Below, in pieces: positions 3,568-37,976 of a DNA stretch of 64,000 nt. Numbering within the stretch: position 1 is the first letter of the stretch; each line of letters starts with the position of its first letter. The DNA is from Octopus bimaculoides (lineage: Eukaryota), in contig NC_068982.1 in the NCBI RefSeq assembly GCF_001194135.2, positions 137,763,067 through 137,827,066 on the forward strand. The letters are read 5' to 3'. The translations under genes and the position numbers were made by a program. The notes beneath the pieces are model-generated. The model made no database searches, was not told the origin of the DNA, and saw only the letters and a program-made list of their open reading frames with translations.

Positions 3568-3696
3568 GTGATACAAACATCTTCTACCAAAGAATATAGC
3601 AAAATTACCAGTCATATTATTTCTGCAAATGTTCTTAACATTCAGATAACTAACCTTGAAGAACCAGTAAAAATATCATTCAATTTAGTATATCAG
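3568..3696 (+). CDS. Adhesion GPCR exon A (GAIN domain, C-terminal subdomain): VIQTSSTKEYSKITSHIISANVLNIQITNLEEPVKISFNLVYQ
   Basis: Acceptor ttctctttacag| and donor CAG|gtaaca; 129 nt, phase 0-0. 'S.IISA.V....ITNL.EPV.I.F' is typical of the GAIN domain just upstream of the GPS. Confidence 0.9.
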
Positions 3697-3852
3697 GTAA
3701 CACCTAAATATTATATTTCTCATAGCTGTTGTTTGTGTTGTAAATGTTGTAGTCACTGTTTCATTTGAAGGCTCTCTCTGATTCCTCCTGAAAAAAATAC
3801 AAACCACAGCAGCAGCAAAAACATAATTGCATTAATATTTGCTGTGATTAAG

Positions 3853-4295
3853 GCAGCGAGCTAGCAGAAATGTTAGCATATCAGGCAAAATGCTTAGTGG
3901 TATTTCGTCTGTCTTTACGCTCTGAGTTCCAATACCGCTGAGGTCAACTTTGCCTTTCTTCCTTTTGGGGGTCGATAAATTAAGTGTAAGTTACGTACTG
4001 GGGTTGATTTAATCGACTGGCCCTCTCCCCACAAATTTCGGACCTTGTGCCTAGGGTAGAAACGAATATTTCTAAGACTCTTAAGGCAGGGAGCTGGCAG
4101 AAATGTTAGAATGCCAGACGAAATGTTTAGCGGTATTTCATCCGCCTTTATGTTCTGAATTCCAATTCCGCCAAGGTCGACTTTGCCTTTCATCCTTTCA
4201 GGGTCGATAAATTAGGTACCAGCTGCATACTGGGCTCGATCTAATTGACTGGCCCTCTCCCCCAAATTTCAGTCCTTGTGCCTAGAGTAGACAAC
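3853..4295 (+). mobile_element. Two tandem copies of SINE family B (ggcggcgagctggcagaa...gtcgactttgcctttcatcctttc...)
   Basis: Copies at about 3853-4075 and 4085-4295. More copies at about 15200-15325(-), 17095-17240(-), 24655-24885(-), 38387-38525(+), 41130-41345(-), 53400-53640(+), 63680-63855(-). The core resembles the Meta-domain of MetaSINE-type elements (recalled, not verified). Confidence 0.8.
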
Positions 4296-5569
4296 AAAAA
4301 AAAGGAAAAAAAAAATATTTGCTGTGATTGTTATTGAGTTTTGCATTCAGGATCATCCTTGCTCTGGTCCCTGATACATAGGTAATCCCTGTTAAACAAG
4401 GTACAATTCACAAATCTAGAGTTCCAGAAACATCATCTTCACTTAGTTGAGGGATATACTCCACATTTCCATATATACAAGAGGGTGCTGAAAAGTTCCT
4501 GGCTTTGGTTAATTATGATCTTATTCTACATATTCCCCTCTGAGATTCACACACTTATTGCAGCAGTCCTTCAGTTTTCTAAACCATGTAAAAGAACTTG
4601 GAAGGTTGGGCCTCCAACCAGGCCTTTCACAATACCCTTAAAGCCAGGAATTGCTTAATACCCCTCATATGTATATATGTATCATCATCATCATCATCAT
4701 CGTTTAACGTCCGCTTTCCATGGTAGCATGGGTTGGACGATTTGACTGAGGACTGGCAAATCAGGTGGCTGCACCAGGCTCCAATTTGATCTGGCAGAGT
4801 TTCTACAGCTGGATGCCCTTCCTAATGCCAACCACTCTGAGAGTGTAGTGGGCGCTTTTGCGTGCCANNNNNNNNNNNNNNNNNNNNNNNNNNNNNNNNN
4901 NNNNNNNNNNNNNNNNNNNNNNNNNNNNNNNNNNNNNNNNNNNNNNNNNNNNNNNNNNNNNNNNNNNNNNNNNNNNNNNNNNNNNNNNNNNNNNNNNNNN
5001 NNNNNNNNNNNNNNNNNNNNNNNNNNNNNNNNNNNNNNNNNNNNNNNNNNNNNNNNNNNNNNNNNNNNNNNNNNNNNNNNNNNNNNNNNNNNNNNNNNNN
5101 NNNNNNNNNNNNNNNNNNNNNNNNNNNNNNNNNNNNNNNNNNNNNNNNNNNNNNNNNNNNNNNNNNNNNNNNNNNNNNNNNNNNNNNNNNNNNNNNNNNN
5201 NNNNNNNNNNNNNNNNNNNNNNNNNNNNNNNNNNNNNNNNNNNNNNNNNNNNNNNNNNNNNNNNNNNNNNNNNNNNNNNNNNNNNNNNNNNNNNNNNNNN
5301 NNNNNNNNNNNNNNNNNNNNNNNNNNNNNNNNNNNNNNNNNNNNNNNNNNNNNNNNNNNNNNNNNNNNNNNNNNNNNNNNNNNNNNNNNNNNNNNNNNNN
5401 NNNNNNNNNNNNTAAAGCCTACATACAGTTTGTGAAATTCCTTCCTAAAGATTCGTACCATTCTACTCTCCAAGAAGTTTTTTTCTTAATTGTAACTTTT
5501 TGAAAAACGTTTTCTCTAAATAAATATATATATATATATGTATATATATGTATATATATATATATATGG

Positions 5570-5664
<95 letters not shown>

Positions 5665-5674
5665 GATAGATAGG

Positions 5675-6130
5675 CACAGGAGTGGCTGTGTGGTAAGTAG
5701 CTTGCTTACCAACCACATGGCTCCAGGTTCAGTCCCACTGCATAGCGCCTTTGGCAAGTATCTTCTACTATGGCTTTGGGCCACCCAAAGCCTTGAGTGG
5801 ATTTGGTAGACGGAAACTGAAAGAAGCGCATCATGTGTGTGTGTATTTGTCCCTTCACCATTGCTTGACAACCAATGTTGGTGTGTTTACATCCCCATAA
5901 CTTAGCAGTTTGGCAAAAGAGACCAATAGAATAAGTACTAGGCTTTAATTCCTGGCTTTAAGGGTATTGTGAAAGGCCTGGTTGGAGAGGCCCAACCTTC
6001 CAAGTTCTTTTACAGAGCTTAGAAAAAGAGACCAATAGAATAAGTCCTGGGATCAATTCATTCGACTAAAGGCTAAATGCTCCAGCATGGCTACAGTCAA
6101 ATGACTGAAACAAATAAAAGAATAAAAGAA
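5675..6130 (+). mobile_element. SINE family A (tRNA-like head ggctgtgtggtaag...ggttcagtccc; internal (TA)n/(TG)n; taaaaga tail)
   Basis: Pol III A/B-box-like head. Further copies or fragments at about 23525-23935(-), 24365-24990(-, split by family B), 25080-25490(+), 29815-30215(-), 40090-40245(-), 44265-44500(-), 44550-44975(+), 45225-45440(+), 49640-50160(+), 54310-54415(+), 63860-63990(+). Confidence 0.85.
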
Positions 6131-6349
6131 TATAGGATGCAGTGTAAATTATGAGAATATACATAACTCTATAAATGAGATGGAATGTTCCATTAAACTA
6201 TCACAGCCTGTGATATGGGATATCTCAATAATAACCAAACACAAATGACAATGGTCTGTTCTGATGTTTTCTATGCCAAATAAACCGACATTCTAATTAC
6301 TAAGCAAGTTGATTAAATTATCAGAATTAAATTTTTTTTTTTCTTTCAG

Positions 6350-6487
6350 AACCAACAGTGTGCTTATTGGGATGAATCCTCTGGTCAGAAACCACGTTGG
6401 TCAACCAATGGCTGTAATACAACCACCAATGGTCCTGGAGATAAAGTAGTTTGTTCCTGTAATCACCTTACAAGTTTTACTCTACTG
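6350..6487 (+). CDS. Adhesion GPCR exon B (GPS motif): NQQCAYWDESSGQKPRWSTNGCNTTTNGPGDKVVCSCNHLTSFTLL
   Basis: Acceptor ttttctttcag|. Full GPS consensus C-x2-W...W...GC...C-x-C-x-HL|TSF. Donor CTG|gttggt is the only one in phase with the next exon; 138 nt, phase 0-0. Confidence 0.93.
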
Positions 6488-8137: not shown

Positions 8138-8232
8138 GATGTCGAGCAGCCCTCATTTGTTTTGTCACACGTTAGCTGTGGAATATCATTAGTCTTGCAC
8201 ATTCTTATAGCAATTTTTTATGGTTGTATCAA
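8138..8232 (+). CDS. Adhesion GPCR exon C (TM1): DVEQPSFVLSHVSCGISLVLHILIAIFYGCI(K)
   Basis: Acceptor gtctgtttcag| and donor AA|gtaagc; 95 nt, phase 0-2; hydrophobic TM1 with the 'CGISL' motif. Confidence 0.9.
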
Positions 8233-8921: not shown

Positions 8922-8949
<28 letters not shown>

Positions 8950-8952
<3 letters not shown>

Positions 8953-9165: not shown

Positions 9166-9169
9166 TTGC

Positions 9170-9590: not shown

Positions 9591-9598
9591 TTTAAGCG

Positions 9599-13169: not shown

Positions 13170-14132
13170 TGTAGTGAAACTACCTATCGCCATTAGATAC
13201 AAAACTACTATCGCCATTACATACAATCTTCTCATTTAAATATAAATAAATGCGAGCGTAGTAGAGAACCCATTCCTTGTCATCACGTGACTGATTATTA
13301 TTCGAATCGGCAACTTCTTCGAACCGTTCCCGCCAGAACGCAAACTGACCAATCACGGCCCCTAATAAGGTCATGTGATAGAGTATATTTCTACCATCTG
13401 GTGAGCCAATAGTTTGTTATAAATAGCTTTAACTCAGCGGCCAAATTTGTCTCGGTCCAGTTTCTCTTTGAGAACTGTTCCGTGTACCACACGACNNNNN
13501 NNNNNNNNNNNNNNNNNNNNNNNNNNNNNNNNNNNNNNNNNNNNNNNNNNNNNNNNNNNNNNNNNNNNNNNNNNNNNNNNNNNNNNNNNNNNNNNNNNNN
13601 NNNNNNNNNNNNNNNNNNNNNNNNNNNNNNNNNNNNNNNNNNNNNNNNNNNNNNNNNNNNNNNNNNNNNNNNNNNNNNNNNNNNNNNNNNNNNNNNNNNN
13701 NNNNNNNNNNNNNNNNNNNNNNNNNNNNNNNNNNNNNGTGTACCCAAGAACTGGTATAATTGTTCACGTGTTATTGACTCTCTTTTTCTCTGCTGTAATA
13801 TTTCTCATACACACATGTATCACTCACATACACACTTTTCTTTGTATGACGGCCTGTCTTTGATTATATTATTATATGTCGCATTCACACTCTCACACAG
13901 ACATACATCTTTAACGCTACAATAAATATCTCTGTTATTCATCTAATACGGTTGTGGTCTTTCATTACTGGTCATCTATGTTATCGTCGCATAACATATC
14001 ATAACATATCATCATCTTCGATATATATCTATTTTGTGTTCGACCGTGTGACGCGTTTAAATAAAAGGAGTCCTCTGTTTTTCCATTCGTCACCATTTCT
14101 CCTTTTTGAGTTCGCACGGTCGTTCCCTTACA
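13170..14132 (+). mobile_element. Solo-LTR-like element, copy 1 (TG...CA, internal N gap)
   Basis: Starts TGTAGTGAAACTACC, ends GTTCCCTTACA; flanked by (TA)n; contains CACGTG, CCAAT, TATAAATA and AATAAA; reverse-complement homolog at 48196-49317. Confidence 0.7.
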
Positions 14133-15370: not shown

Positions 15371-15494
15371 AAAGCTGCGGAGATGTTTGGCATCAAAGAT
15401 TTTGATAAGCCTGTGCATTTCATTAGCTGTTGTTAATATCATCTTCCTCATTGGGATGCAGCCTTATGCCTTAAAAACAACAGCTGCTTGTAAG
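15371..15494 (+). CDS. Adhesion GPCR exon D (ICL1-TM2-ECL1): KLRRCLASKILISLCISLAVVNIIFLIGMQPYALKTTAACK
   Basis: Acceptor tgttattcag| and donor AAG|gtaagt; 124 nt, phase 2-0; class B2 TM2 pattern 'I..SLC.SL...N..FL.G'. Confidence 0.93.
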
Positions 15495-17739: not shown

Positions 17740-17884
17740 GCAGTGGCTGCTCTGTTACACTACTCCCTTATAGCAACTGTCATGTGGATGGGTATCAAAG
17801 TTTTTCATGCTTATATAGTTTTGGTTACTGAAGGGGAAAGCTACGAAAAATATTTTATGATCGTGAGTTCAATTTTGGCCTGGG
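17740..17884 (+). CDS. Adhesion GPCR exon E (TM3-ICL2-TM4 start): AVAALLHYSLIATVMWMGIKVFHAYIVLVTEGESYEKYFMIVSSILAW(G)
   Basis: Acceptor tcattcaag| and donor TGGG|gtaagt; 145 nt, phase 0-1; 'C.AVAALLHY......WM' TM3 signature. Confidence 0.93.
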
Positions 17885-18883: not shown

Positions 18884-21800
18884 CAGTGGTTCCAAAAGTA
18901 GGTGGTACCATCCCCTTGAGGCAGTGGAAAGATCCAGAGACAGTGGAAAGATCTGGTGGGGTGGGCGCTGGAATAAAATAGGGCAATAAGGGAGTTATGG
19001 ATGGCATTGCTAGTATCTATTTTTCAATGGTACACTCAAGTTTAAAAAATAGTGTTTAGTAAAACTAACTTAAAGAACATCATCATCATCGTTTAACGTC
19101 CGCTTTCCATGCTAGCATGGGTTGGACGATTTGACTGAGGACTGGTGAACCAGATGGCTACACCAGGCTCCAATCTGATTTGGCAGAGTTTCTACAGCTG
19201 GATGCCCTTCCTAACGCCAACCACTCTGAGAGTGTAGTGGGTGCTTTTATGTGCCACCGGTACGAAGGCCAGTCAGGTGGTACTGGCAACGGCCACGCTC
19301 AAAATGGTGTATTTTACGTGCCACCTGCACGGGAGCCAGTCCAGCGGCCCTGGCAGCGACCTTGCTCGAATGTCTTTTCACGTGCCACCGGCACAAATGC
19401 CAGTAAGGCGGCAAAATAAATTTTAAAAAAACAAAAGTTCTCTAATAAAGCTGGTCATAAAATTCACAAGAGAATTTCCCAAAAAGACAAAAAGCATACA
19501 ACACTGAACATATGACATTTTTTCATCATGTATTTTTTCAACATTTTGAAAATTTATAATTCGTATTCTTTCAGAAAAAATTTTTCAAAAGGCTATCATT
19601 TTTTGGTGGTAGGGTTTCCAGATTTTAATTGTGAAAATCAAAATGAAATGGATGTATGAAATTTTTTCTCTAACAATGCATACTACAAATGTTTCAAAAT
19701 GTGGAATATTATAGCATTGAAAATTAATAGTGCAACCTACTTAGAACCTCCAAACTTAGCTTGCAGTTAGATTAGTTCTCCTTGCCAAGCAGTAAAAGTA
19801 TATTTCTTGCTTATGTTTGCTTCGTCAAAGATTAATGTTTTGTTCAAGAGTAATAATTTGTAAGACAACTAGAAACAGATACACAAGAGGAATCAATATT
19901 TTGTGTTTGAGCAATAGAAGGGACACCATCGATGGTAGGTTGTCATTGCAGCTTTATCAGTTTATTGTAAAAGTTATACCTAGCATGTTTAGTGCACACT
20001 CTACAATCTTCAGGCAACATCTGGCTGCAATAACAAATCAATGAGCACTGTTATCACAGCAGTTAATAAAATGAACACACATGCTTACAATTCCTCAGTT
20101 TCAACTCCTCTGTACTGACAATGATAAAGATTTGGTTGAGGGAACCTGTGGAAGAGGTAGACCCAGGAAGACCTGGGATGAGGTGGTGAAGCACAACCTT
20201 CGAACATTAGGCCTCACCGAGGCAATGACTTGTGACCGAGACCTTTGGAAATATGCTGTGCATGAGAAGATCCAGCAAGCCAAGTGAGACCATAATCCAA
20301 GGCCTCTTTCAGGGATGTAGTCAGCCCACTTATACGTACCTTTCCTTCATTGGACACTAAATTTCGCTTGCGAAGACCTGTTGAGGCAAGTGAAATCGAA
20401 ATCGAACTAAATTCGACGACTGGCACCCATGCCAACGTCTCCTTCACTGGACACTAAACTCGGCTTGCAAAGACCCGTTGGGACAAGTGAAAGCGAAATC
20501 GTGATGGCACTTGTACCAGTGGAGCGCTAAGAGCACCATCCAAGCGTGATCGTTGCCAGAGCAGCTGTCTGGCTTCCGTGCCAGTGGCACGTAAATAGCA
20601 CCATTTGAGCGTGATCGTTACCAGCGTCGCCTTCCTGGCACTTGTGCCGGTGGCACGTGAAAAGACATTCGAGCAAGGTCGTTGCCAGTGCCGCTGGACT
20701 GGCTCCTGTGCAGGTGGCACATAAAATACACCAATTTTGAGCATGGTCATTGCCAGTACCGCCTGACTGGCCTTCGTGCCAGTGGCACGTAAAAGCACCC
20801 ACTACACTCTCGGAGTGGTTGGTGTTAGGAAGGGCATCCAGCTGTAGAAATTCTGCCAAATCAGATTGGAGCCTGGTGCAGCCATCTGATTTGCCAGTCC
20901 TCAGTCAAATCATCCAACCCATGCTAGCATGGAAAGCAGACGTTAAATGATGATGATGATGATGATGATGAACATTTGTTGTTGCACACAGAAATTCAAT
21001 GGCTGTCAAAGGGAAACTGCCTGGAAGTTTCTATTCCCTTTTTAAAACAGTTGTTGCATTCAGTTGTTGAGACTCTTATTCTGTTCATTATTTAGATTAT
21101 TTACATCATTTACATTTGATGGATATTTGTCCTCATCTTGTTTGTTGTTGACACAAATATCTATCAAATGTAAATAATGTAAATAATGTACATAATTCCT
21201 CATCTCTTAAATATAGAACTGTCTTATTCTGTTCTTTGTGATGAACCAAGAAATATCAAGTATGGCATTGCTTATATGGCAGATATATTCACAAAGTTCA
21301 ATGAAGTTAACTTGCAACTGCAAGGAAATTAGGTTAAACCTTATCAAAGTAAAACCAACAATTCAAATGTAACATAAGCCTCCAGTTTCGGAGCCTCTCT
21401 GAATTGGAGAAGGAAAAGTGCACACCAGAAGATGGCATTCAAGTAGATTGTTCACACCTGGATGAGCTGTACTGAGACATGTCTGATAGGTTTCAGGATA
21501 CTACTTTTAGTTACATTACCAAGATATCAGCAACGAGGAAACAAGAATAGTGGAGGAAGAGCTGGTTTCACTTAAAGTTAAATGACAAGACCTGTTGAGG
21601 CAAGTGAAATCGAAATTGAAAATTGAACCAAATTCGTTGACTGGCACCCATGCCAACCTTCCTTCATTGGGCACTAAACTCAGCTTGCGAAGACCTGTTG
21701 GGGCAAGTGAGATCGAAACTGAACCAAATTCGATGACTGGCACCCGTGCCAGTGGAGCGCTAACAGCACCATCCGAGCAGGATCACTGCCAGAGCAGTGG

Positions 21801-24060: not shown

Positions 24061-24124
24061 GTCTTCCAGCTCTCATTACTCTGGCAGTTAACTTCACAAA
24101 CAATTACATCAGAGTTGCACAAGT
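24061..24124 (+). CDS. Adhesion GPCR exon F (TM4 end-ECL2): (G)LPALITLAVNFTNNYIRVAQ(V)
   Basis: Acceptor ttattgtcag| and donor GT|gtaagt; 64 nt, phase 1-2; joining restores 'WGLP' and 'VCWL' across the junctions. Confidence 0.9.
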
Positions 24125-26117
24125 GTAAGTATTTCGCAGTTTCGTTTACCTCTTTTTTCTCTGATCTTCAAAATTAATATTTTTCTAGACTCATTTATAT
24201 TTTGAAAAACTATAAAATAATGGATAAGCTACCATCACGCTAAAGTCATGACCTTCGCTGTTGATAGTGATCCTACTTCACTAACATTGTTAATGTATTT
24301 TTTTGTTTTTTTTGAGAAACATGGGTCTCAAAGATCACATTTGTCCCTCCTTTCCACTCAATAAGAAATCATAAATATCTCTTTTACTCTTTTACTTGTT
24401 TCAGTCATTTGACTGTGGTCATGCTGGAGCACCGCCTTTACAGTCGAGCAAATCGACCCCCAGGACTTATTCTTTGTAAGCCTAGTACTTTTTCTATCGG
24501 TCTCATTTGCCAAACCGCTAGGTTACAGGGACATAAACATACCAGCATCGATTGTCAAGCGATGTGGTGAGGGGACAAACACAGACACACAGACATATAT
24601 ACACTCACATACATATGTATATACATATGTACAACTGGCTTCTTTCAGTTTCTTATTTCTTTATTGCCCACAAGGGGCTAAACACAGAGGGGACAAACAA
24701 GGACAGACAAAGGGATTAAGTCGATTAGATTGACCCCAGTGTGTAACTGGTACTTAATTTATCGACCCTGAAAGGATGAAAGGCAAAGTCGACCTCGGCG
24801 GAATTTGAACTCAGAACATAACGGCAGACGAAATACTGCAAAGCATTTCACCCGGCGTGCTAACGTTTCTGCCAGCTCGCCACCTTGTTTCAGTTTCTGT
24901 CTACACTCACAAGGCTTTGGACGGCCCGAGGCTATAGTAGAAGACACTTGCCCAAGGTGCCATGCAGTGGGACTGAACCTGGAACCATGTCTATTGACAG
25001 ATAACTTCAAACATGAATACAATCAACATATAAGAATAAAACAAAGCATCATACATTTTTCAACTTAATTATTTACATGGGCGTAGGAGTGGCTGTGTAG
25101 TAAGTAGCTTGCTTACCAACCACATGGTTCCGGGTTCAGTCACACTGCGTGGCATCTTAGGCAAGTGTCTTCTACTATAGCCTCAGGCCGACCAAAGCCT
25201 CGTGAGTAGATTTGGAAGCCCGTCGTATATATGTATATATATATGTATGTGTGTGTATATGTTTGTGTGTGTGTCTGTGTTTGTCCCCCCAACATCGCTT
25301 GACAACTGATGGTGGTGTGTTTATGTCCCTGTAACTTAGCAGTTCGGCAAAAGGGAACGGTAGAATAAGTACTAGGCTTACGAAGAATAAGCTCTGGGGT
25401 CGATTTGCTCGACTATAAAGGCAGTGCTCCAGCATGGCCACAGTCAAAAGACTGAAACAAGTAAAAGAGTAAAAGAGTAAAGAGTACGATACAAAAGATT
25501 GCATTGATTACTAATTATTATTTTTCTTGTATTTTTACAATAATATTAGGAATATTTGACACATAAGCTATTGAAATTTGTTACAACAAACAACTAGCTT
25601 CTCTTTTATCATTGCAAGTGTCAATGAGGAAACAGTCATATAATTAGGTGACAGCCTCAAAGGCTGATAAGTTACTATTTCATCACTTCTGAGTATTCAA
25701 GGCTCTATAGTAATTATCATCATCATCATCATTTAACGTCCGTTTTCCACACTAGCATGGGTTGGACAATTTGACTGAGGTCTGGTGAACCAGAAGGCTG
25801 CACCAGGCTCCAATCTGATCTAGCAGAGTTTCTACAGTTGTATGCCCTTCCTAACGCCAACCACTCCAAGAGTGTAGTGGGTGCTTTTACGTGCCACTAG
25901 CACAAGGGCCAGTCACACGGTACTGGCAACAGCCACACTCAAAATGGTGTTTTTTTACATGCCACCTGCACAGGAGCTAGTCCAGCGGCACTGGCAACAA
26001 CCTTGCTCATGTATGTATGTATGTATGTATGTATGTATGTATGTATGTATGTATGTGTGTGTGTGTATGTGTGTGTGTATGTATGCATGCATGTATGTAT
26101 GTATGCATGTATGTATG

Positions 26118-26583
26118 TAATTGTGAGAGGGAGGCACAAGACCGTGATGGATGGAAGAAGATAGTGCATGATGGTTGTTTAAGGTTTGAGAGGGAGAGAG
26201 TGAAGTATGAGAGAATTGAGAGGGGGCTTAGAAAGGGGAACCTGTGGAAAGTGAGAGTGTTGCTTTCTATATGTGTGGTTTGTGGGCGGAGGTGTTTGAG
26301 TCATGCAGGCCTGGTGAGCCATCAAAATTCTCATAGAAATCGACCCATGATAAACAATGATGTGACTATTAAAATTCATAACAGAACGTGTATAAAATGT
26401 GGAAGGGTGTACCTCTCAGTTGGAGATCTAAAAAGACATTTTAAGGGAGTGCATATGGTGGCACCTGTTTCTCCTGCCAGCCAGCACAGTTGTCTAGTAT
26501 ATAATAAAATGTATAAAAGCTTGGCCGGGCTTAAAAGTCATATAAGGGCATCACATGGAAACAATCAGGAATCATTTCAGTAA
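26118..26583 (+). mobile_element. RTE-like LINE C-terminus with three C2H2-like motifs
   Basis: 'AQDRDGWKKIVHDG' (RTE terminal motif) followed by CVVCGRRCLSHAGLVSHQNSH, CIKCGRVYLSVGDLKRHFKGVH and CLVYNKMYKSLAGLKSHIRASH. Confidence 0.65.
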
Positions 26584-27762: not shown

Positions 27763-28139
27763 CTGTTGGTTATCCAAGACAACTTTTTACATTACTTTCC
27801 TGACACCTGTGGTGATAGTGTGCATCTTCCATATTATCTTCAGTTTTCTTATACAGAAAATTATGCGAAGACACACCATACAAGAACAGAAAAGAACAGC
27901 TTTTCTTAGCTTCATTTGTGTGTTTTTCCTATTGTTCCTGCTCAGATTCTCATGGTTATTAACATTCTTAGCTTTTGATGAAGCAGCCGAAGTGTTCGAC
28001 AAGCTCTTCAGTATATTCAACCTCTTACAAAGTCTCCTTATCTTCTTATTTTACTGTATAAACGAGAAATATATCAGACATCTCATCTGCAAGTGTGCAT
28101 GGAATCAAGAGGAAGAGAAAACTATGAACAGCAGCCAAA
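27763..28139 (+). CDS. Adhesion GPCR exon G (TM5-TM6-TM7-proximal tail): CWLSKTTFYITFLTPVVIVCIFHIIFSFLIQKIMRRHTIQEQKRTAFLSFICVFFLLFLLRFSWLLTFLAFDEAAEVFDKLFSIFNLLQSLLIFLFYCINEKYIRHLICKCAWNQEEEKTMNSSQ
   Basis: Acceptor atttctttgtag| and donor CAAA|gtaagt; 377 nt, phase 2-1; three hydrophobic helices with 'CWL', 'F..P' and 'FN..Q...IF.FYC' motifs. Confidence 0.93.
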
Positions 28140-28315
28140 GTAAGTGAAATTAAGTACTTTTTTCATTCTTACCACCACCAAAATCATCATGACACCAAAA
28201 TTATCATGATGAGGATAATCACAAACATCACATCTAGCGACACAACCAGTATCGACACCACCTTAGGGTAGACATCATCATAAATACCAACTCTACTGTG
28301 TGTGCATGTGTGCGC

Positions 28316-28353
<38 letters not shown>

Positions 28354-28430
28354 ATATGTATGTGGGTGGGTGTAAAATATACATACACTCATACTTTGAG
28401 TTCTATTTCTCCTGTTTGCACCAACATACC

Positions 28431-28462
<32 letters not shown>

Positions 28463-28999
28463 TAATATGTAATTATATGCATATATCCATACATATATGT
28501 ACATACCTACATCTATATGTATACATACATGCATATATGGGTACAGGACATTAAAAAAAACGTTAAACACAATGAGAAACGAGACANNNNNNNNNNNNNN
28601 NNNNNNNNNNNNNNNNNNNNNNNNNNNNNNNNNNNNNNNNNNNNNNNNNNNNNNNNNNNNNNNNNNNNNNNNNNNNNNNNNNNNNNNNNNNNNNNNNNNN
28701 NNNNNNNNNNNNNNNNNNNNNNNNNNNNNNNNNNNNNNNNNNNNNNNNNNNNNNNNNNNNNNNNNNNNNNNNNNNNNNNNNNNNNNNNNNNNNNNNNNNN
28801 NNNNNNNNNNNNNNNNNNNNNNNNNNNNNNNNNNNNNNNNNNNNNNNNNNNNNNNNNNNNNNNNNNNNNNNNNNNNNTATATATATATATAGCAAGATTA
28901 AAAGAAGATAGAGATATACAATTAACATATTTTAAATTTGATTTATTAAGATTATAATATAATTATGCTATAATATAAAATAAAAAAATAAGAATACAA

Positions 29000-30530
29000 A
29001 AGCAAATATTAGTCCTTCAAGTTGTTTTGATTCATACCCAATAATGAATTTATGGAAACATTCATATTTATGGGTATGAATCTCATCAGGGCAATATTTG
29101 CCAAAAAGAAGCAGACATCTAAGGATTGCTAAATCATAGAATTGTGTTTCTCCAAAATGGATAAACATAAAATCTCATTGAATTCATGAAGATTCTTGTA
29201 AAGAAAACAATAAGTCAAGGGGCTCTTGGATGACATCTTTTGAGTGGTTATCTCCCCTGGATTTGACTTTTGGGCAAACAGTTATGTCGGATGGTAAATT
29301 GTTTGCATTACATTGTATTATATACTGTGTGTATGTGATGTTCATATGCTTGTGTGCTGAGGTAGTTCGTCATGGAGAAATATTTCTTCTGTGTGTGGAG
29401 TTCATGTGTTATGTATATTCAAATTTCACTTTCAGGAAAGGAGCTATCCTTGTGGGATTAGCAGCACAGGTGGTGGTTCCTTTTTGAAGTGTTTAAGTGT
29501 GAAATATTGCTTGTGTATGCAGGGAGAGAACATTTCATCCCTAATATTTAGGATATTATCTATTGGCTGTATTATATTTAATTTTTCAGCGATATGTCTT
29601 TGTATGAAGCTTCTTCATTTGGTTTACTGTAGGGTTCGAATTTGCCTGTGCTAAGGTTCATGTTAATATTTAGAAAATTGACTTCTTTAAGGTTGGTACA
29701 AATTGTGGTTCTCAGACCTAGTTGGCTAAATACTTTGTATAATTTTGTCCTTACTCTATGCATATTATGTCCGTTTTGATTGTGTACCACTCCCAGGCAA
29801 CCTTCCCTATATAAAGCTATACTCTTTTACTTGTTTCAGTCATTTGACTGTGGCCATGCTGGAGCACCGCCATTAGTCGAGCTAATCGACCCCAGGACTT
29901 ATTCTTTCTAAGCCTAGTACTTATTCTATTGATCTCTTTTACTGAACTGCTAAGTTACGGGGACGTAAACACACCAAGTGATGTTGGGGGGGGGGGCGAC
30001 AAACACAAACACATACACACGCATACATATATATATATACATATATACGATGGGCTGCTTTCAGTGTCTGTCCACCAAATCCATTCACAAGGCTTTGGTC
30101 GGCCTGAGGCTATAGTAGAAGACACTTGCCCAAGGTGCCTTGCAGTGGGACTGAACCCGGAACCATGTGGTCCATAAGCAAGCTACTTACCACGCAGCCA
30201 CTCGTACGCCTATGTATGTTAGCTTTTTTTTTTTTTTCTTTTCTAAAGATATCTAAAATATAGAGATCTACAAGATCAGCTATTTCTATGCTCTCATAGC
30301 TCCCCATTGCCACATGAAATAATTCATCCCCCTTCTTCTTTACCCAATAAGAATTATCATAAAAACGTCATGGCTTCCTTGCCTTCATAATTATATTTAT
30401 ATCAGTGTTTGTTATGATAACGTAAGCCTTACTAAATTTACGTGCCTTCTGAAGCAAGCTTTTGGAGACTGAGATGTAAAACTCTATATCAAATTGTATA
30501 AATTTGTATTTGAGTTTACCTTCTATTTTC
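29000..30530 (-). mobile_element. Penelope-like element RT relic, split by a SINE at 29815-30215
   Basis: 'KFIQFDIEFYISVSKSLLQKA...WVKKKGDELFHVAMGSYESIEIADLVDLYILD', then across the SINE 'ANIALYREGCLGV...GLRTTICTNLKEVNFLNINMNLSTGKFEPYSKPN'; left boundary approximate. Confidence 0.8.
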
Positions 30531-30839
30531 TTAAAGTGTTCAATAGTGTGTGTGTGTGTGTGTGTGTGAATGTATGCATGTATACATGCAGATTTGTATG
30601 TTTTGTTTTATATATGTATTCTCATGCATATACTTTCACATCTAGACATGCTCATATAAATTAAAATAATAAACCTCTGGAAAGTTTTACAGATTTTTAC
30701 ACTTCCAGTGATGGATTGGATCTATAGTCTTCGAATCAGTTTTCTCCTTTCTGGTTTTGAGAAGCCTAATTTCTCAAGATTGGTATTTAGGGGTAGTGTG
30801 TTACATATCCTAGTGCCCCAATAATTACAGATATAAACA

Positions 30840-30896
<57 letters not shown>

Positions 30897-32387
30897 AAGC
30901 AAGTACAAATGTGTATCTCTATGTGCATATATGTATGTGAGGTCGATGAAAACGATTTACCCACTGCCCCGAAATTGTTGGTTTTGTGCCCAAATTTGAA
31001 ACCAATATTACTGAAATCTCATAAAGTATCTACTGAGGTTAGCACAGTTGGTAATATGGATAAATTAGAATACAATAGAGTTAATAATAGGGCAAAAAAA
31101 GAGAAATATGTTATTATGTTGGTGTAAACAGGTGAGTTAATGACAATATTTCTGTTTTGTTTTACAGGTGAGTTCATAACAATATTTTTGTTTTACATCT
31201 TTACTAGGTTTACTGATAGGTTATTAATATTATTGGTTTTTAGCCAGATATCTGTCATAATCTGGCAGACTTATGATAAAAAGTGTTCCAAGTGTGACCA
31301 TCCTGTCTTTTTCACTTATTGTAAATCAGTAAATACATTAAACATATCTTCATATCAAAGTATCAAACTTTGGTTTGCTACTAAGATAACCATTCTCTTT
31401 CTGTCTTCAAGATTAGATACAGGCTGCAAGATACAAAATAATAAATACGAAATAACAAATGATAGTGTCATTATCTTTCATCATCTTCTTCCATGCTTCA
31501 ATCGATTACCATGAGTCATCAATGTCCAAGTCAGTTCTTATTCAGAGTTAACATCCACTTTGACTGTTTGAGGTACACATCTCACTTAAATACTTTGGAT
31601 TTTCTATGACAAGATACCCTTCTTAACACCAGCCACTTTATAAAGGATCTTGGGTACGTTTTATTGCAACACAGGCATTAATAAGATTGTCATCATCATT
31701 ACTATTTAACGTCCATTGTCCATGCTAGGATGGGTTGGACAGTTTGACCAGAGCTGGCAAGCTGAGGGGCTGTACCAGACTCCAAGGTCCACAATTAGAT
31801 TGAAGGTTCCACTGAAAATTACAGTGTCTCCTCTCATTCACCAGTCACTTCCAAGTGTGTACTGGGGCCATTTTCTCATAGTGCAAGCACTGGTCAGGTT
31901 GTCTTGCATCTCATATTATTATACAATTCTCATTGCTCTTTGATGTGTTTTTACAATCATGTTGAGAAAGTGAGAAGTTTAAGTGATAACGGAAGAATAA
32001 TGAGGATGCAGGGACTGAAAGTTACAAGAAAATGAGGATAAGAACAATGACTTGAAAGCGAGGTGGAGAATGACATGACTGAATGGTTGAAGCTAAGATA
32101 CAATTATTTATGAGATGGTTAATGATTTACTAACATCTTGAGAATCCAATAATCAAAGACAGTGTTACTTACTACTAGAACATTAGTGTTGGCTTTGGTA
32201 AAGTATGAGGCTCAATCACAAAATCTCAACAAGCATTAGAAAGTCTAACTGTCAAATCATTTGGTCAGTGTTGCTGTGAATGTTCGTAATTGGTAAAAGT
32301 GTAGATTAATAATTATAGCTTTGTGTGTGGATGTGAATGTTGGTAAATTTTACTATAAATTATAACACTTGAAATTATGAATTTCAG

Positions 32388-32654
32388 ACTTACAAATGCA
32401 GGGACAACCAAGGATATCGAAGCAAAGTACATCACCGCAAAGTACATCACAGCAAAGTACATCACCGCAAAGTACATCATCGCAAAGTACATCATCGCAA
32501 AGTACATCACAGCAAAGTACATCACAGCAAAGTACATCACAGCAAAGTACATTACAGCAAAGTATATCACTGCAAAGTACATCACTGCAAAGTACATCAC
32601 AGCAAAGTACATCACAGCAAAGTACATCACAGCAAAGAACACCTCAGCCAGTTG
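32388..32654 (+). CDS. Adhesion GPCR exon H (Ser/Thr/Gln-rich cytoplasmic repeat exon): (N)LQMQGQPRISK(QSTSx)14QRTPQPV
   Basis: Acceptor atgaatttcag| and donor GTTG|gtgagt; 267 nt, symmetric phase 1-1, open in the frame required by exons G and I; splice flanks homologous to those of exon I. No transcript evidence. Confidence 0.72.
32423..32647 (+). repeat. 15-bp coding minisatellite CAAAGTACATCACAG x14 plus 1 degenerate unit
   Basis: Units counted directly at 15-bp spacing from 32423; lies within exon H. Confidence 0.95.
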
Positions 32655-33213
32655 GTGAGTATAAAAGTGAAGTACCAAATTGATTTCTATAAGTCTTCCC
32701 TTCAGCACTAGCACTGGTCAGGTTTTCTTGCATCTCATAAAATTAGACAGTTCTTACTGCTCTTAAGATGTGTTTTTTCATTCAAGGTAACATGTTGAGA
32801 AGTGATGACAGAAGAATAATGAGGATGCAGGGACTGAAAGTTGTGAGAAAATGAGGATAAGAACAATGACTTGAAAGCGAGGTGGAGAATGACAAGACTG
32901 AGTGATTGTCAGTTGTAAGCCAACAGAGATGATTAATGATGTATTAACATCTTGGGAAACTGATAATTAAAGTCAAAAGTACTTATAAGAACATCATTCT
33001 CAGCTTTCTAATGTAGGAGATTCAATAACAAATCTCAACTGAAAATGTTTTTAACTGGTTAAAATTGTTAAAGATAATTTCATTTGTTTACAAAATCATT
33101 CTCCTGAAGTTCTTGATTTATCATCTTATGAAGATGTCAGATGTTCGGTATGAGATATCATCTCTCGTTGGAGTATCTTCTCAGAAGGTCTCAGGTTAGA
33201 ATATATATTATAG

Positions 33214-33249
<36 letters not shown>

Positions 33250-36130
33250 ACTGAGAATGCATGTGTGTGTGCATGTAAATGTGTGTCTGTTTGTGTGTGT
33301 GCATCACTAAAACTCAGGAACTACTCAAACGATTTCATTCAAATTTTACACACGCCCTATTTAAGGTCCATGCAGTGTCATGGGCCAAAAAGATTTTCAA
33401 CTTCTTGCCTAATGTGAGCCTGGAGCAATCTCTTATCTCTTACACTATTTCGGTATTACCTGTCAAAAGTGAAACAATAAAATCGCTATTGTAATGTGAG
33501 AGAATACTTTCACTGTGATATATTTTTGTATGTATATGTATCATCATCATCATCATCGTCGTCATTTAACGTCCGCTTTCCATACTAGCATGGGTTGGAC
33601 GATTTGACTGAGGACTGGTGAAACCAGATGGCTACACCAGGCTCCAATCTGATTTGGCAGAGTTTCTACAGCTGGATGCCCTTCCTAACGCTAACCACTC
33701 TGAGAGTGTAGTAGGTGCTTTTACATGCCACCGGCACGAAGGCCAGTCAGGTGGTACCAGCAACGGCCACGCTCAAAATGGTGTATTTTACGTGCCACCT
33801 GCACAGGAGCCAGTTCGGCGGCACTGCCAATGATCTCGCTCGAATGTCTTTACACGTGCCATNNNNNNNNNNNNNNNNNNNNNNNNNNNNNNNNNNNNNN
33901 NNNNNNNNNNNNNNNNNNNNNNNNNNNNNNNNNNNNNNNNNNNNNNNNNNNNNNNNNNNNNNNNNNNNNNNNNNNNNNNNNNNNNNNNNNNNNNNNNNNN
34001 NNNNNNNNNNNNNNNNNNNNNNNNNNNNNNNNNNNNNCAATGAAGGAGACGATGTTGGCATGGGTGCCAGTCGTCGAATTTAGTTCGATTTCGATTTCAC
34101 TTTCCTCAACAGGTCTTCGCAAGTGGAGTTTAGTGTCCAATGAAGGAAGGTACGTATGAGTGGGCTGCCTGAGGCCTTGGATTTAGGTCTCACTTGGCTT
34201 GTCTGGTCTTCTCACGCACAGCATATTTCCAAAGGTCTCGGTCAGAAGTCATCGCCTCGGTGAGGCCCAATGTTCGAAGGTCATGCCTCACCACCTCATC
34301 CCAGGTCTTCCTGGGCCTACCTCTTCCACAGGTTCCCTCCAATGCTAGGGTGTGGCACTTTTTCACACAGCTATCCTCATCCAATGCATGTATATGTATG
34401 TTTATATGTCTATGCATACATATCAGATCAGACTGGAGCCTGGTGCAGCCTTCTGGCTTGCCAGCCCTCAATCAGACCTCCAATCCCTGCCAGCATGGAA
34501 AGCGGATATTAAAAGACAATGATGATGATGGGACTTCTACAATATAGATCTGTGCTGAGACACAATCATATTCATTGTAATGAAAGTCACTGATTTTTTT
34601 AGTCAGATTATATATAATCTATATAGATATCTAGTATTGCAAGGTCAGACAGTGTAATTTTGTATTATATATATACCCTGTTAACATGATAATGAATCAG
34701 ATATTATTCATTAACTGTTTTACATTTGTATGTCTGAAATTTAACCTTATTTTGTCATAGCATCATCTTGTACCCTCACCCAACAGGTTTAAACCTTGTT
34801 ACCATTTGTGTAAGTAATTCTAATGTTTTTCTTGGGCATGCAACCACTTCTCTACAAACTGGGATTATTGACTTCTATAGTCCAATAAGGTCCAGATGTT
34901 ATTGTGTCCTAGCTTCATTCCAAATGAAACAAAATGTGAAGCATTTCTGTATATTTATGATACTATTTAGGTATATTTTATAAAGTATTACGGTGACTTT
35001 TTGTAATTAGTTGGTCTTAATTAACATTAGTGACAAATGTAGTATAACAGAGGTAATGTGAATGGGATTACACATTCCTCGTGATGTTGTTCTTATATTA
35101 ACAATAACATCACAAAGACAAGTTTCTGTCAGTCAGACCCTTCTACACAGGTGTAAGTTCCAAGTCCAAATTTACTGGTTACTCGGTTTCTACCCTATCA
35201 ATGTCAACCACATTGATAAAGGAGATATCAAAGAGGAAGGTAACTTTGTTTGATGTATAGATGAGATTTAAATAGAGGTAACCTATATTCTTGAGAATAA
35301 GTTCTTTTGTACCATTCCAGATATCTTTGTCACAATATATGGATGATCGCTTATATGCAGTTTATGAGATTGAGTGCAAGTGCACAGTGTTTTATGGCAC
35401 ATTACCACTGTCCATTTCACCTGTGTAGATCTAATCATTGTTCACCTGAAAAGAAACTGCTTTATTAAGGAGGATGAATGACAAGCAAATGTTTTCAAAT
35501 ATTTCAAGAATCAGATGACATTCTGGTGAACTGTAACGTGGGCGGTTAAAATTAAAGATTACCAGTGGCAACCTTTAACAGAGAGAGAGAGAGACAGACA
35601 GAGAGACAGAGACAGAGAGATATATATATAGAGAGAGACAGAGAGAGACACAGAGAGAGAGCAGGTATATGATGATCCTAAATGAAGTGGTGTGTCATGT
35701 GTTTGTGGCTAGATCTTAGATGGACAACCTGGTTGACATTGGAATTAAGCAGATGATGAGAAGAATATTGGTTAGTAAAGTCTAGAAGTGAGAGGATATA
35801 GATATGACTGAAATATAATAAATGAAAGACAAAACTAAATGATAAAAATCCTTAACAATTGGTAAATAAATTAGATAATTGCAACATTGTTAGATTAAGT
35901 AGGATGTCTTAATATAGAGAGGAGATTTAGGAAGACTAGTTTGCTCTGTTGTAGACCTAAATATCAAGTTATTACATGGTACCACTGTAGAAAGTATAAA
36001 AATGTTGACTGAAATCACAGTGGTCACCAGTTGACCATTAATGATAGGAATATCTCACAACATTGAAATATGAATTCCAATAGAGATATAGAAATTTAAC
36101 TATTAAGTGTAAAACTTGGAAATATTTCAG

Positions 36131-36202
36131 AGAATTCAAGGCTGACCGAATCGGATCTCCTACAGGTGGCAAAACATTTAGGACCAAACTGGAAGCATGT
36201 TG
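36131..36202 (+). CDS. Adhesion GPCR exon I (Death domain, N-terminal part): (E)NSRLTESDLLQVAKHLGPNWKHV(G)
   Basis: Acceptor aatatttcag| and donor GTTG|gtaagt; 72 nt, phase 1-1; 'L..VA..LG..WK..G' Death-domain helix 1-2 pattern. Confidence 0.85.
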
Positions 36203-36659
36203 GTAAGTATAAAATAAGAATACTTAATTGATTTCTATAAGTTTTACCTACAGTTGAACTTTTGTTTGCTAGAATGACTGTGAACTGGTTCCATTCCTAA
36301 TTTCCAATTGAAAGATTAACTGTAATGTAATTCTATAAAAGATACTGATATTACTGAAATTTCATAAAATATCTACGGAGGTTAGTAATGAAACAACACA
36401 ATACAGTTGATATTGTCTTTTGGAATTGGGAACTGAAATACACCATTGTGTTGGTATAAGCAGGCGAGTTAATGGTAATGTCTTTGTTTTACATTTTTTT
36501 CTGAGTTTGTTGATGTTATTGCTGTTTAGCCAGATGTTTATTGTAATTTGGTTGACATATGATAAAAAGTCTTCTATTTGTGAAATCCCCGACTTGTTTG
36601 TGGGAGCATGTTATCAAATGTATCCTTTATAACACGATAGGGTGTATTTTGAGTGAAGT

Positions 36660-37100
36660 ATGCTTACCTTATTTCTTGCCAGTTTTTATACATCCTCCAC
36701 ACTCAATGCAACATTACACTTTACAAATACACATCATACAATCTACTCTTCATCTAGGGATGGAATCCCTTAGTTGCCAGTGGACATAATAGCTTTCAGT
36801 GCATTCTTCACTTAATTTTTTTCTCTAACTACAATGCTACATGCAAAGTCCTTTCTCTCTGTCAATCTACCTCTGATCCAACTACACCTCTAATGTGTAA
36901 TGGGTGCACCATACAGAATTCCTGTCAACCCTCCCCTCCCCACCACCATCTTTCTTGCATGTCAAATATGGTAACTCTCCAGATGATATAGATACTGATT
37001 GACGTAGTGGTTCCTTCAGGACTTAACTGTTTTAGATGTAAAGTCCAGATGTTGGTACCTCCTATCTTCTTTCCTATTAACTAAAATTCTTTTCATTGCT
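36660..37100 (-). mobile_element. RTE-like RT relic
   Basis: Degenerate 'TKGFHP.MKSRLYDVYL.SVMLH', resembling the RTE motif 'KGRLYDACVR.AMLHG'. Confidence 0.5.
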
Positions 37101-37770
37101 TGGTTTTCTTTCAGACCTCTCCATTATCAACTTCTCTATAAATTGTGGCCTTGATCCAGTGAGTCACGAACCCTAGTTCATGTTTATAGCTAGTGTGTTT
37201 TATAATATGCGATGTGTATCTGACAATATTATATTTTGCATTTTGTGTAGCTGAGATTATTCTGGTATCATATTTGTATTTCATTGGTCCTGCTGCACCC
37301 AATATTACCAGTATTGTTTGATAGTCCAATCCCTGCTGTCTACATTTTGATACATTATAAATATTAAATAGCCAGAAAAGGAGAGGCATTACACATGCCC
37401 TTTTAGGAATTAATCATGTGATGTTATCAGGTGATCATCAGTATTTGGAGCAAATGGTGTGACTGTTGGCGATCTATGTTGATTCTTTTGGCTCTGATAC
37501 ACTTTTGCCAACACAAACACTTCTCCTTCCATTTGTTTACCAGAAATTTTCCCAAAAGTAATTTTCAATTAATCCTTAATTTCTTCTCCACCTTCATCTT
37601 TTATTTCAACCTCTGATATTTTTACTAACATCTTTAAAAACAGAGAACAATGTCTTATACTTTTCGTGTTTCTTAACAATGGTTATTTCTCTACAGATAT
37701 AGTTTCTTTATTATATTTATGTTACTGTTAATGTTGTTGCAATTAGTTCTTGTTTTTGTGTCTTTTGCAG

Positions 37771-37976
37771 GTATCTTTCTGGGCATTGATTTAGTCAGCC
37801 TAGAAAATATCAAGCATGATCATGCTAATAACAGTCGAGAACAGAGCTTTCAGATGCTAACAACATGGTTTAGAGGCTCCGATTGTAAGACAGATAGAGT
37901 TGAAATACTCAGAGAAGCTATTGAAAATGCTGAGTGTTACTATGCACTTGAACATCTACCAAAAGACATAAAGTAA
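37771..37976 (+). CDS. Adhesion GPCR exon J (rest of Death domain, stop): (G)IFLGIDLVSLENIKHDHANNSREQSFQMLTTWFRGSDCKTDRVEILREAIENAECYYALEHLPKDIK*
   Basis: Acceptor tgtcttttgcag|, phase 1; 'LG.....E.I......EQ..QML..W.......L..A' Death-domain pattern; TAA at 37974-37976 and AATAAA at 38123. AA|gtaaat at the end could instead be a donor. Confidence 0.87.

Follow-up and report, generated by a model that had tools for sequence, protein, structure and literature searches.

The death-domain tail of LOC106882527, an octopus adhesion GPCR gene model, seems to be a captured exon block

The closest solved 7TM and GAIN sequences to the receptor described here are those of the vertebrate adhesion GPCRs ADGRG2 and ADGRG6 (GPR126), with which it shares the GPS HL/T motif (cleavage site at the slash); this closeness is one of sequence and not of established orthology. 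Both vertebrate receptors are without a cytoplasmic death domain (DD), and their ectodomains (CUB/PTX in ADGRG6) do not consist of leucine-rich repeats (LRRs). To our knowledge, no vertebrate adhesion GPCR has a DD. The preliminary description of the locus likewise took vertebrate adhesion GPCRs to lack a DD in the tail; this agrees with general knowledge, and no contradicting paper was found in the literature searched. A cytoplasmic DD on a membrane receptor, as predicted for the octopus gene LOC106882527, is found in TNFR1, Fas, p75NTR and the UNC5 receptors. These are single-pass proteins with TNFR Cys-rich or Ig/TSP/ZU5-UPA modules, whereas a Pfam search of the LOC106882527 protein found no TNFR_c6, ZU5 or UPA and its membrane part is a 7TM. 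Toll-like receptors provide an analogy, with no homology implied, in that an LRR ectodomain is combined with a cytoplasmic innate-immune homotypic-interaction domain; they are, however, single-pass and carry a TIR domain instead of a DD.

Two octopus families resemble different parts of the gene. The 'group 3' adhesion GPCRs (NCBI ADGRG2/G6-like; Ritschard et al. 2019), an octopus-specific expansion to which LOC106882527 belongs, share its exon structure over the GAIN-to-TM7 part, with 45–53% identity between LOC106882527 and its paralogues. Several members have an LRR ectodomain, and the family and LOC106882527 have in common the phase-1 donor that follows the TM7 exon. The paralogues end approximately 30 aa past TM7 in AETN[TAF], whereas LOC106882527 continues into an STSQ repeat and a DD. 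The ANK-RING(zf-C3HC4_3)-DD or 'MIB2-like' proteins share with LOC106882527 the DD clade, the STSQ/PSTSQ linker exon, the split of the DD over two exons, the phases, the intron flanks and the 3'UTR. Their ankyrin repeats and C3HC4 RING are absent from LOC106882527, in which the DD module sits on a 7TM.

The window, meaning the whole 64,000-nucleotide stretch that was analysed, lies on Octopus bimaculoides chromosome CM046602.1 and contains the ten final exons of LOC106882527 (Table 1). It matches sequence L003 at offset 64949, onto which the complete gene maps with ~36 exons, ~93 kb and 1535 aa, the window covering the 3' third. The encoded protein consists of a signal peptide, ~18 LRRs, a Cys-rich region, GAIN/GPS, an ADGRG2/G6-like 7TM, an STSQ pentapeptide repeat and a death domain. 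The same 538-residue C-terminus is present in XP_052821851.1 (P0064), XP_014788728.1 (P0032) and A0A0L8FLR8/Ocbimv22014869m (P0065), although a common ab initio logic may lie behind all three models. The gene is therefore not new, and the possibility, left open in the preliminary description, that the architecture is undescribed does not hold: the model was released in 2015, and the Death domain of Ocbimv22014869m was listed, in a single-sentence mention, by Ritschard et al. 2019 (PMC6408891). The GPS, 7tm_2 and Death coordinates given there are 644–645 residues above those of the 538-aa model, and Table S3 of that paper reports CDD cd01670 at 2e-14 for the death domain. The literature values for LOC106882527/Ocbimv22014869m, which are gene-level, assign expression shares of 0.71 to skin and 0.17 to sucker. 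The architecture is unusual and, beyond the single sentence, unstudied; no further description of an adhesion GPCR or 7tm_2 protein with a death domain in other phyla was found in the literature searched.

Table 1. Features of the 3' part of LOC106882527, in window coordinates (slashes mark splice or cleavage sites).
Feature	Coordinates	Strand	Description
Exon A	3568..3696	+	Phase 0-0; C-terminal part of GAIN domain; starts at acceptor
Exon B	6350..6487	+	GPS motif with 4 Cys, 2 Trp and HL/T cleavage site (CSCNHL/TSFTLL)
Exon C	8138..8232	+	Stachel-to-TM1 linker and TM1
Exon D	15371..15494	+	TM2; +1 frameshift here in O. vulgaris orthologue
Exon E	17740..17884	+	TM3
Exon F	24061..24124	+	TM4 (GLPALITLAVNFTNNYIRVAQV)
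Exon G	27763..28139	+	TM5-TM7 and proximal tail; ends at phase-1 donor AAA/GTAAGT, conserved in family
In-frame TGA past unused exon G donor	28145..28147	+	...NSSQSK-stop; would end a DD-less short-tailed isoform
Exon H	32388..32654	+	Phase 1-1, skippable S/T/Q linker
Exon I	36131..36202	+	72 nt, phase 1-1; DD helix 1 and start of helix 2
Exon J	37771..37976	+	Remaining DD and TAA stop 37974-37976
AATAAA polyadenylation signal	38123..38128	+	147 nt 3' of stop

The ten exons, which had been described as joining in phase, were rebuilt from the sequence and gave 1617 nt encoding 538 aa plus a TAA stop, with consistent phases and AG/exon/GT at all junctions, the donor of exon B (GTTGGT) being weak. 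Since exon A begins at an acceptor, the N-terminus of the receptor lies outside the window; the preceding exon is located 243–389 bp upstream of the window start. The proposed architecture of GAIN/GPS, 7TM, S/T/Q-rich tail and Death domain was borne out by domain scores, by the predicted fold and by exact match to the three public models. In the 538-aa protein, Pfam matched 7tm_2 (PF00002) at 2.2e-24 (86.5 bits, profile positions 6–250 of 250) and GPS at 2.4e-13, the motif C..W...W....C....CSCNHL/TSFTLL standing directly before TM1. Among PDB sequences the 7TM was closest to ADGRG2 (5.7e-42), then ADGRG6 (2.2e-40), and GAIN_ADGRA3 is on record for close relatives of the octopus receptor. The full-length model P0064 has, upstream of the window, a signal peptide and eight LRR_8 matches (2.2e-92). 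With a secretin-type 7TM, a GAIN/GPS region and an adhesion-type ectodomain, LOC106882527 is an adhesion GPCR (class B2). The cleavage motif is present, and we regard autoproteolysis and tethered-agonist activation as putative; the Stachel reads TSFTLLD versus TSFALLM in paralogues, so that position 7 has lost its Met.

The tail of the protein is a death domain by profile score and by predicted fold. Pfam matched Death (PF00531) at 1.6e-5 with 25.4 bits in the 538-aa protein and with 31.2 bits in the tail alone, against a curated cut-off of 22.6 bits, so the profile search proposed with the preliminary description recovered all three domains. The structure prediction proposed alongside it, an AlphaFold2 model of the tail with pLDDT 87 and pTM 0.78, had five helices according to DSSP, the first of which (residues 14–34) was unusually long. 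All of its top 35 PDB fold matches were death domains, the best being the DD of PIDD (TM 0.74, rmsd 1.9 Å), and the fold matched the DDs of PIDD, RAIDD, TNFR1, RIPK1 and ankyrin with TM 0.64–0.74. A profile of the DD clade had the RIPK1 DD as its best match (6e-15). The DD differed from its counterpart in sequence L004 by a dS of 0.93 and a dN of 0.50 with an intact ORF; the omega of 0.54 indicates only moderate constraint. The search of representative sequences and the structure prediction used exon J alone and then a substring of P0032. No further 7TM protein was present among 32 DD matches in 1.84 billion representatives, and the fusion therefore appears confined to one lineage. A profile search with the DD alignment retrieved only 10 short octopus proteins, none with a 7TM and none on the O. 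vulgaris chromosome bearing the orthologue. A word-index search with the 92-aa DD gave no matches and also missed the window's own protein.

The join between receptor and tail falls at a splice donor that the receptor family already had. Paralogues splice the phase-1 donor of the TM7 exon to a tiny 16-aa terminal exon ending in AETN[TAF] and a stop, as most full-length paralogue models do. Paralogue P0006 has an identical AAA/GTAAGT phase-1 donor, with its terminal exon (SISNHETECKKAETNA, then stop) 2.7 kb downstream, and the O. vulgaris orthologue retains the phase-1 donor as G/GTAAGTG. By this sequence comparison, the exon G donor is the ancestral phase-1 donor of the family. The canonical AETN[TAF] tail exon was not detectable in the window or in the O. 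vulgaris sequence (L001). The start of exon I (ENSRLTESD) has a weak likeness to paralogue tails (SENSRTAETN) with E = 1.8, which was taken as chance.

The closest DDs to that of LOC106882527 belong to octopus ANK-RING-DD proteins (34–52% identity). In L004, the gene for P0045 (187 aa) likewise has a repeat exon, then one of 72 nt, then a terminal one, all in corresponding phases, and its splice-flank and 3'UTR sequences are homologous to those of exons H-I-J. Exon H and the PSTSQ repeat exon of this ANK-RING-DD family gene are homologous, exon I equals its counterpart in length, phase and intron-flank motifs, and exon J is homologous to the terminal exon in its intron end and 3'UTR. In a tblastn search of the entire window with 31 ANK-RING-DD family proteins, only exons I and J gave matches, and ANK and RING exons were absent. 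At the level of DNA, the H-I-J block is thus an incomplete duplicate of the 3' end of an octopus ANK-RING-DD ('MIB2-like') gene. Because exons H, I and J are all phase 1, the block joins in frame to the ancestral exon G donor. In place of the usual short tail exon, the receptor gene seems to have acquired a duplicated linker and DD block whose source was an octopus E3-ligase-like gene, and exon capture after segmental duplication seems to be the origin of the DD tail.

The locus may also yield other products. Exon H contains a 15-nt tandem repeat (32421–32641, 14.7 copies, 93% match; QSTSQ). When exon H was omitted, exon G joined exon I directly with the frame kept (A+AG = K), as the preliminary description had noted, to give 449 aa; isoforms of differing linker length are therefore possible. 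Read-through of the exon G donor meets a stop after two codons, so a DD-less isoform, an ordinary short-tailed receptor, would be easily made. A single mRNA encoding both 7TM and DD is a prediction of the gene models, and the expression values are for the gene as a whole.

We consider a fused receptor, with a captured DD block and signalling through it, to be the probable explanation of the locus as a whole. A rather unlikely alternative is that the model is chimeric: the receptor would end at exon G, either by read-through to the TGA at 28145–28147 or in an undetected tail exon, and H-I-J would be an independent gene for a small soluble STSQ-repeat-DD protein, starting at the in-frame ATG in exon H (32396–32398) or in a 5' exon of its own. 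Such a separate transcript is conceivable, since short DD-only octopus proteins (P0036, P0044, P0045) are annotated in addition to this ATG, P0045 having the same three-exon layout. The stop two codons past the exon G donor, the weak polypyrimidine tracts at the acceptors of exons H and I, and the O. vulgaris gene models of the orthologue, which end differently and do not extend to a DD, point the same way. However, the exon G donor is the conserved donor of a family whose paralogues always splice it on to a downstream terminal exon, so transcription normally runs past exon G, and the canonical tail exon that it would otherwise reach is missing. Moreover, exons H and I open at phase-1 acceptors like internal exons, three annotation runs including the 2022–23 RefSeq run unite G-H-I-J, and many short DD-only models appear to be pieces of longer ANK-RING-DD genes. 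Still less probable is that H-I-J is a dead, untranscribed partial ANK-RING-DD duplicate stitched to the receptor by gene predictors. It is a 3' fragment without the ANK and RING exons of its family, the region is repeat-rich with tandem duplications in O. vulgaris, and the orthologue there looks decayed. Against decay in O. bimaculoides, the 278 nt of DD coding sequence contain no stop or frameshift despite a dS of ~0.9 from the nearest available paralogue, and the DD retains 19 of the 21 positions with 90% or higher conservation among 15 relatives, versus 24 of 71 other positions (P = 3e-5), the variable sites having diverged. The splice sites, stop and AATAAA are also intact, the DD scores above the Pfam threshold, and its fold is confidently predicted.

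An assembly artefact was considered as well. The region contains four N runs, 4868–5412, 13496–13737, 28587–28877 and 33863–34037, located in introns A-B, C-D, G-H and H-I respectively, and none interrupts an exon or reading frame. The latter two, gaps of estimated size, separate the TM7 exon from the DD exons, and a scaffolding error across either could have placed the DD exons of another locus beside the receptor; the v2 chromosome assembly has the same gaps and hence is no independent check. The independent O. vulgaris assembly, in contrast, is colinear with window 28000–35167 on both sides of both gaps. Just 77 bp and 26 bp of that assembly are the counterparts of the stretches that contain the gaps, which identifies these stretches as repeat insertions in the window. 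The DD exons lie on the uninterrupted piece 34038–38287 together with the colinear stretch 34384–35167. This colinearity speaks for both joins that connect the TM7 exon to the DD exons, and we judge a scaffolding error very improbable. The O. vulgaris sequence was compared up to the equivalent of window ~35.2 kb, short of the DD exons, because its intron is tandemly expanded. The repeat body of exon H was absent at the homologous O. vulgaris position, and the frameshifted orthologue looks degraded. A second copy in O. vulgaris is P0022.

If the fused receptor is made, it would be produced mainly in skin and suckers, where its LRR ectodomain could bind a ligand or surface. Receptor clustering, or activation through GAIN/Stachel, might then gather the RIPK1/PIDD/ankyrin-type DDs, and these could nucleate homotypic DD assembly. 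The prime candidate partners would be the ANK-RING-DD E3 ligases from which the DD came, or MyD88-, FADD- or RIPK-like adaptors, and the outcome could be a ubiquitin, NF-kB or cell-death branch added to or replacing G-protein signalling. That adhesion or GPS sensing feeds into DD adaptors is conjectural, and homotypic DD–DD binding is putative. A more specific version, which we put forward only tentatively, is that LOC106882527 is a working skin and sucker receptor in which ligand or microbe contact, or mechanical GAIN dissociation, turns the tail into a DD platform recruiting ANK-RING-DD E3 ligases or RIPK/MyD88-like proteins. If true, this would be a GPCR-based innate-immune or contact sensor made by exon capture, with no vertebrate counterpart.

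The significance is limited by the facts that the gene model and Death match were public, that the fusion is seen in one species and that the O. vulgaris orthologue looks degraded. The present analysis adds the ancestral phase-1 donor, the partial copy H-I-J, the lack of ANK/RING exons in the window and the confinement of gaps to introns. Should the fused protein be produced, it would represent the first known adhesion GPCR with a cytoplasmic death-fold domain, and it would tie a receptor with seven membrane passes to the oligomeric signalling through DDs that TNFR, Toll and UNC5-type pathways otherwise use, in octopus chemotactile and barrier tissues. The locus offers a clean, datable case of exon shuffling, in which a phase-1 module, duplicated from a neighbouring gene family that has expanded, was paired with a conserved donor of matching phase, and LOC106882527 illustrates the birth of lineage-specific receptor architectures within gene-family expansions.

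The gene was rebuilt from open frames and splice sites in the window (64 kb, G+C 37.6%, eight N runs), with exon F found by a phase-constrained scan. The model comprised ten exons (A–J) bounded by AG and GT, with 1617 nt encoding 538 aa and a TAA stop, exactly as the preliminary description had it. The direct in-phase join of exon G to exon I (A+AG = K) was also reproduced; skipping of exon H, a phase 1-1 cassette, preserves the frame. An acceptor precedes exon A, so that the model represents the 3' portion of a larger gene. The protein matched the Pfam profiles 7tm_2 (2.2e-24), GPS (2.4e-13) and Death (1.6e-5). The Death score was 25.4 bits (threshold 22.6), and 31.2 bits for the tail alone. 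The quoted death-domain (DD) peptide is split on the + strand between two segments that start at 36139 and 37779. With 15 relatives included, the AlphaFold2 model of the tail had a pLDDT of 87 and a pTM of 0.78. All of its best 35 PDB matches were death domains, including those of PIDD (TM 0.74, rmsd 1.9 Å), RAIDD, TNFR1, RIPK1 and ankyrin. The reported adhesion GPCR with a C-terminal, death-domain-folded tail was confirmed as real and correctly read.

An exhaustive phmmer search with exon J returned a 1283-aa protein with 100% identity across the entire exon. Its cluster held three Octopus bimaculoides models: XP_014788728.1 ("GPR126-like"), XP_052821851.1 ("uncharacterized protein LOC106882527", 1535 aa, with signal peptide) and UniProt A0A0L8FLR8 (1183 aa). 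All three share the same 538-residue C-terminus, including exon H. In full, the gene spans 93 kb and comprises about 36 exons; the window lies at about 137.76–137.83 Mb of CM046602.1. The encoded architecture is a signal peptide, LRRs (LRR_8, 2.2e-92), a Cys-rich region, GAIN/GPS, 7tm_2, an STSQ repeat and Death. The nearest solved structures to the 7TM/GAIN part were ADGRG2 (5.7e-42), then ADGRG6. The ectodomain LRRs are mostly encoded one per 72-nt exon, the length of DD exon I; this layout suggests that the LRRs multiplied through exon duplication.

Ritschard et al. 2019 (PMC6408891) placed Ocbimv22014869m/A0A0L8FLR8 in an octopus-specific "group 3" adhesion-GPCR expansion, with GPS at 691–734, 7tm_2 at 742–970 and Death at 1102–1178 (their Table S3). 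These coordinates equal those of our model plus 645, 645 and 644, respectively, and the near-constant offset points to one and the same set of exons. In their Table S2, the gene has a tissue-specificity index of 0.96; skin accounts for 71% of its expression and suckers for 17%. No further paper on an adhesion GPCR with a death domain was found in the searchable literature; the architecture is therefore already public and noticed (annotated, mentioned once) and was never analysed.

The closest death domains (34–52% identity) all came from octopus proteins that combine ankyrin repeats and a C3HC4 RING with a DD at the C-terminus (ANK-RING-DD), annotated as "MIB2-like". In O. bimaculoides, one such gene (P0045, locus L004) has a three-exon 3' end identical in layout to exons H, I and J, with recognisably homologous donor flanks, acceptor flanks and 3'UTR. 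Exon H is a 15-nt array (14.7 copies, 93% match) whose core ACATCACAG is common to the L004 PSTSQ repeat. H-I-J is, on this sequence evidence, a DNA-level duplicate of an ANK-RING-DD gene, and only a partial one because no ANK or RING exon occurs in the window. Its exons are phase 1 and thus compatible with the phase-1 donor of the receptor. One O. vulgaris 'MIB2' model (P0034, CAI9744465.1) combines RING, DD, LRR_8 and DD. The ANK-RING-DD genes P0037 and P0038 and the receptor paralogues P0002, P0008 and P0024 lie on one chromosome (34,562,309-bp contig). The two families seem intermingled, an arrangement that would promote exon exchange or chimeric gene models.

The receptor paralogues (45–53% identity) are without a DD. 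Most full-length group-3 models (P0001–P0012, P0019, P0020) terminate about 30 aa past TM7 in a conserved AETN[T/A/F] motif, which a separate 16-aa exon encodes; the motif may serve as a PDZ-type ligand. Paralogue P0006 of O. bimaculoides has a TM7 exon ending in phase 1 (...TTCAAAA/GTAAGT), and the 16-aa terminal exon follows 2.7 kb downstream. Exon G ends likewise in phase 1 (...GCCAAA/GTAAGT), and the O. vulgaris orthologue keeps a phase-1 G/GTAAGTG donor despite a 24-nt deletion immediately before it. We read the exon G donor as ancestral. No AETN-type exon was detectable past the TM7 exon, either in the window or in the orthologous O. vulgaris locus (L001); the motif is lost from the DD-bearing gene.

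In O. vulgaris, the TM2 exon of the orthologue is frameshifted by +1 (ATTCGGGATG versus ATTGGGATG). Public models (P0014, P0022) skip TM exons, and orthologue models end in a repeat-derived exon. The gene looks decayed and may be a pseudogene in that species. The element serving as terminal exon in these annotations (...LRSDDRRIMRMQGLKVVRK*) has two copies flanking exon H in the window and is probably repeat-derived. The exon H repeat body is missing from the corresponding position in O. vulgaris. There, a different 105-bp stretch (L001 76604–76709 versus window 32183–32653) is open in the same phase (...SVDDEDDNDYEHLDQYSEVYD) and precedes a conserved GTGAGT donor homologous to that of exon H. 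This stretch is similar to acidic linkers of some DD-family proteins (P0039). In the intron past the TM7 exon, a unit of about 2.3–3 kb is present in three to four tandem copies; because of this expansion, the L001 comparison covers the sequence before the expected DD exons.

Features located in the window and in related octopus loci (unprefixed coordinates refer to the window)
Feature	Location	Strand	Remark
Tc3-type HTH transposase remnant (4e-4)	2186-2500	+	just upstream of exon A
Exon preceding exon A	243-389 bp upstream of the window
Exon F	24061-24124		small TM4 exon
200-aa open frame, C2H2-like CxxC...HxxxH spacing	25981-26580	+	intron F-G, after microsatellite
SINE-like element	19135-19416, 25775-25897, 33533-33862, 39093-39387, others	both
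...LRSDDRRIMRMQGLKVVRK* element	31886-32038, 32747-32857	+
AATAAA	147 nt past stop
Mos1/mariner HTH_48 transposase remnant (3.9e-16)	56846-57908	+	then second ORF without Pfam match
Ectodomain LRRs	L003 (chromosome stretch) 20015-41530		upstream of window
Frameshifted TM2 exon	L001 (OX597815.1) 41840-41985		orthologue of exon D, 15371-15494
Tandem-copy intron region	L001 71000-81297		single-copy in window, 31400-35170
Inverted partial copy of exons A-B	L001 261-6694	-
Paralogue AETN terminal exon	L002 (paralogue locus) 60570-60620
P0045 3' exon 1	L004		PSTSQ repeat exon, 15-nt period, phase 1-1
P0045 3' exon 2	L004		72 nt, phase 1-1
P0045 3' exon 3	L004		terminal DD exon

All four assembly gaps inside the gene model are intronic (A-B, C-D, G-H, H-I), and therefore no exon or frame relies on unread bases. 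Two of them, G-H and H-I, fall between the TM7 and the DD exons, so the linkage hinges on those joins. That a misjoin brought the DD exons beside the receptor is unlikely, because L001, from an independent assembly, is colinear with window 28000–35167 across both gaps, and the DD exons (36131–37976) share the uninterrupted stretch 34038–38287 with the colinear segment 34384–35167. Window 28000–28444 and 30547–31750 map 77 bp apart in O. vulgaris, and 33327–33541 and 34391–34797 map 26 bp apart; from this spacing, both gaps are placed within repeat insertions. The chromosome-level O. bimaculoides assembly is no independent test, since its sequence and gaps are identical to those of the window. 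A SINE-like element (translating ...GYTRLQSDLAEFLQLDALPNANHSESVVGAF...), with many copies in the window, L001 and L004, adjoins two assembly gaps. The C2H2-like frame had no Pfam match and is probably part of a transposable element.

The captured module might also be a dead fragment. Against this, the DD exons have diverged from the L004 copy (dS 0.93, dN 0.50, omega 0.54) with an ORF free of stops and frameshifts, canonical splice sites and an AATAAA. Of the 21 positions with at least 90% conservation among 15 relatives, the domain retains 19, versus a consensus match at 24 of 71 elsewhere (binomial P = 3e-5), so that divergence has been filtered for DD function. By itself, this constraint would bear on the survival of the module, not on which transcript carries it. 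The main rival to a fused protein is an independent H-I-J transcript, given the in-frame ATG within exon H and the short DD-only models in octopus annotations. With the exon G donor unused, translation would end two codons on (...NSSQSK*, TGA 28145–28147), giving an ordinary short-tailed receptor. The G>H or G>I junction is taken from three annotation pipelines, and among 32 significant DD matches (1.84 billion representatives searched) there was no second 7TM protein. We lean towards the predicted receptor-DD protein really being made.

If so, the LRR ectodomain could bind a ligand or surface within the epithelium of skin or suckers. Receptor clustering, or GAIN/Stachel-dependent activation (Stachel TSFTLLD, versus TSFALLM in paralogues), would then bring the tail DDs together, and these might seed a homotypic DD complex. 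As partners, the ANK-RING-DD E3 ligases from which the domain came would be the most obvious choice, with MyD88-, FADD- or RIPK-like adaptors as alternative candidates. The DD clade profile was nearest to the RIPK1 DD (6e-15), then ankyrin and PIDD. RIPK1, itself a DD protein, is ubiquitylated by mammalian MIB2 in TNF signalling (PMC5912950); this is context and not evidence on the octopus proteins. Signalling by this route is a tentative proposal that we consider rather doubtful; what the analysis shows is the parts of the receptor, its DD fold and the route by which it evolved. The gene is best described as a lineage-specific adhesion GPCR variant made by exon capture.
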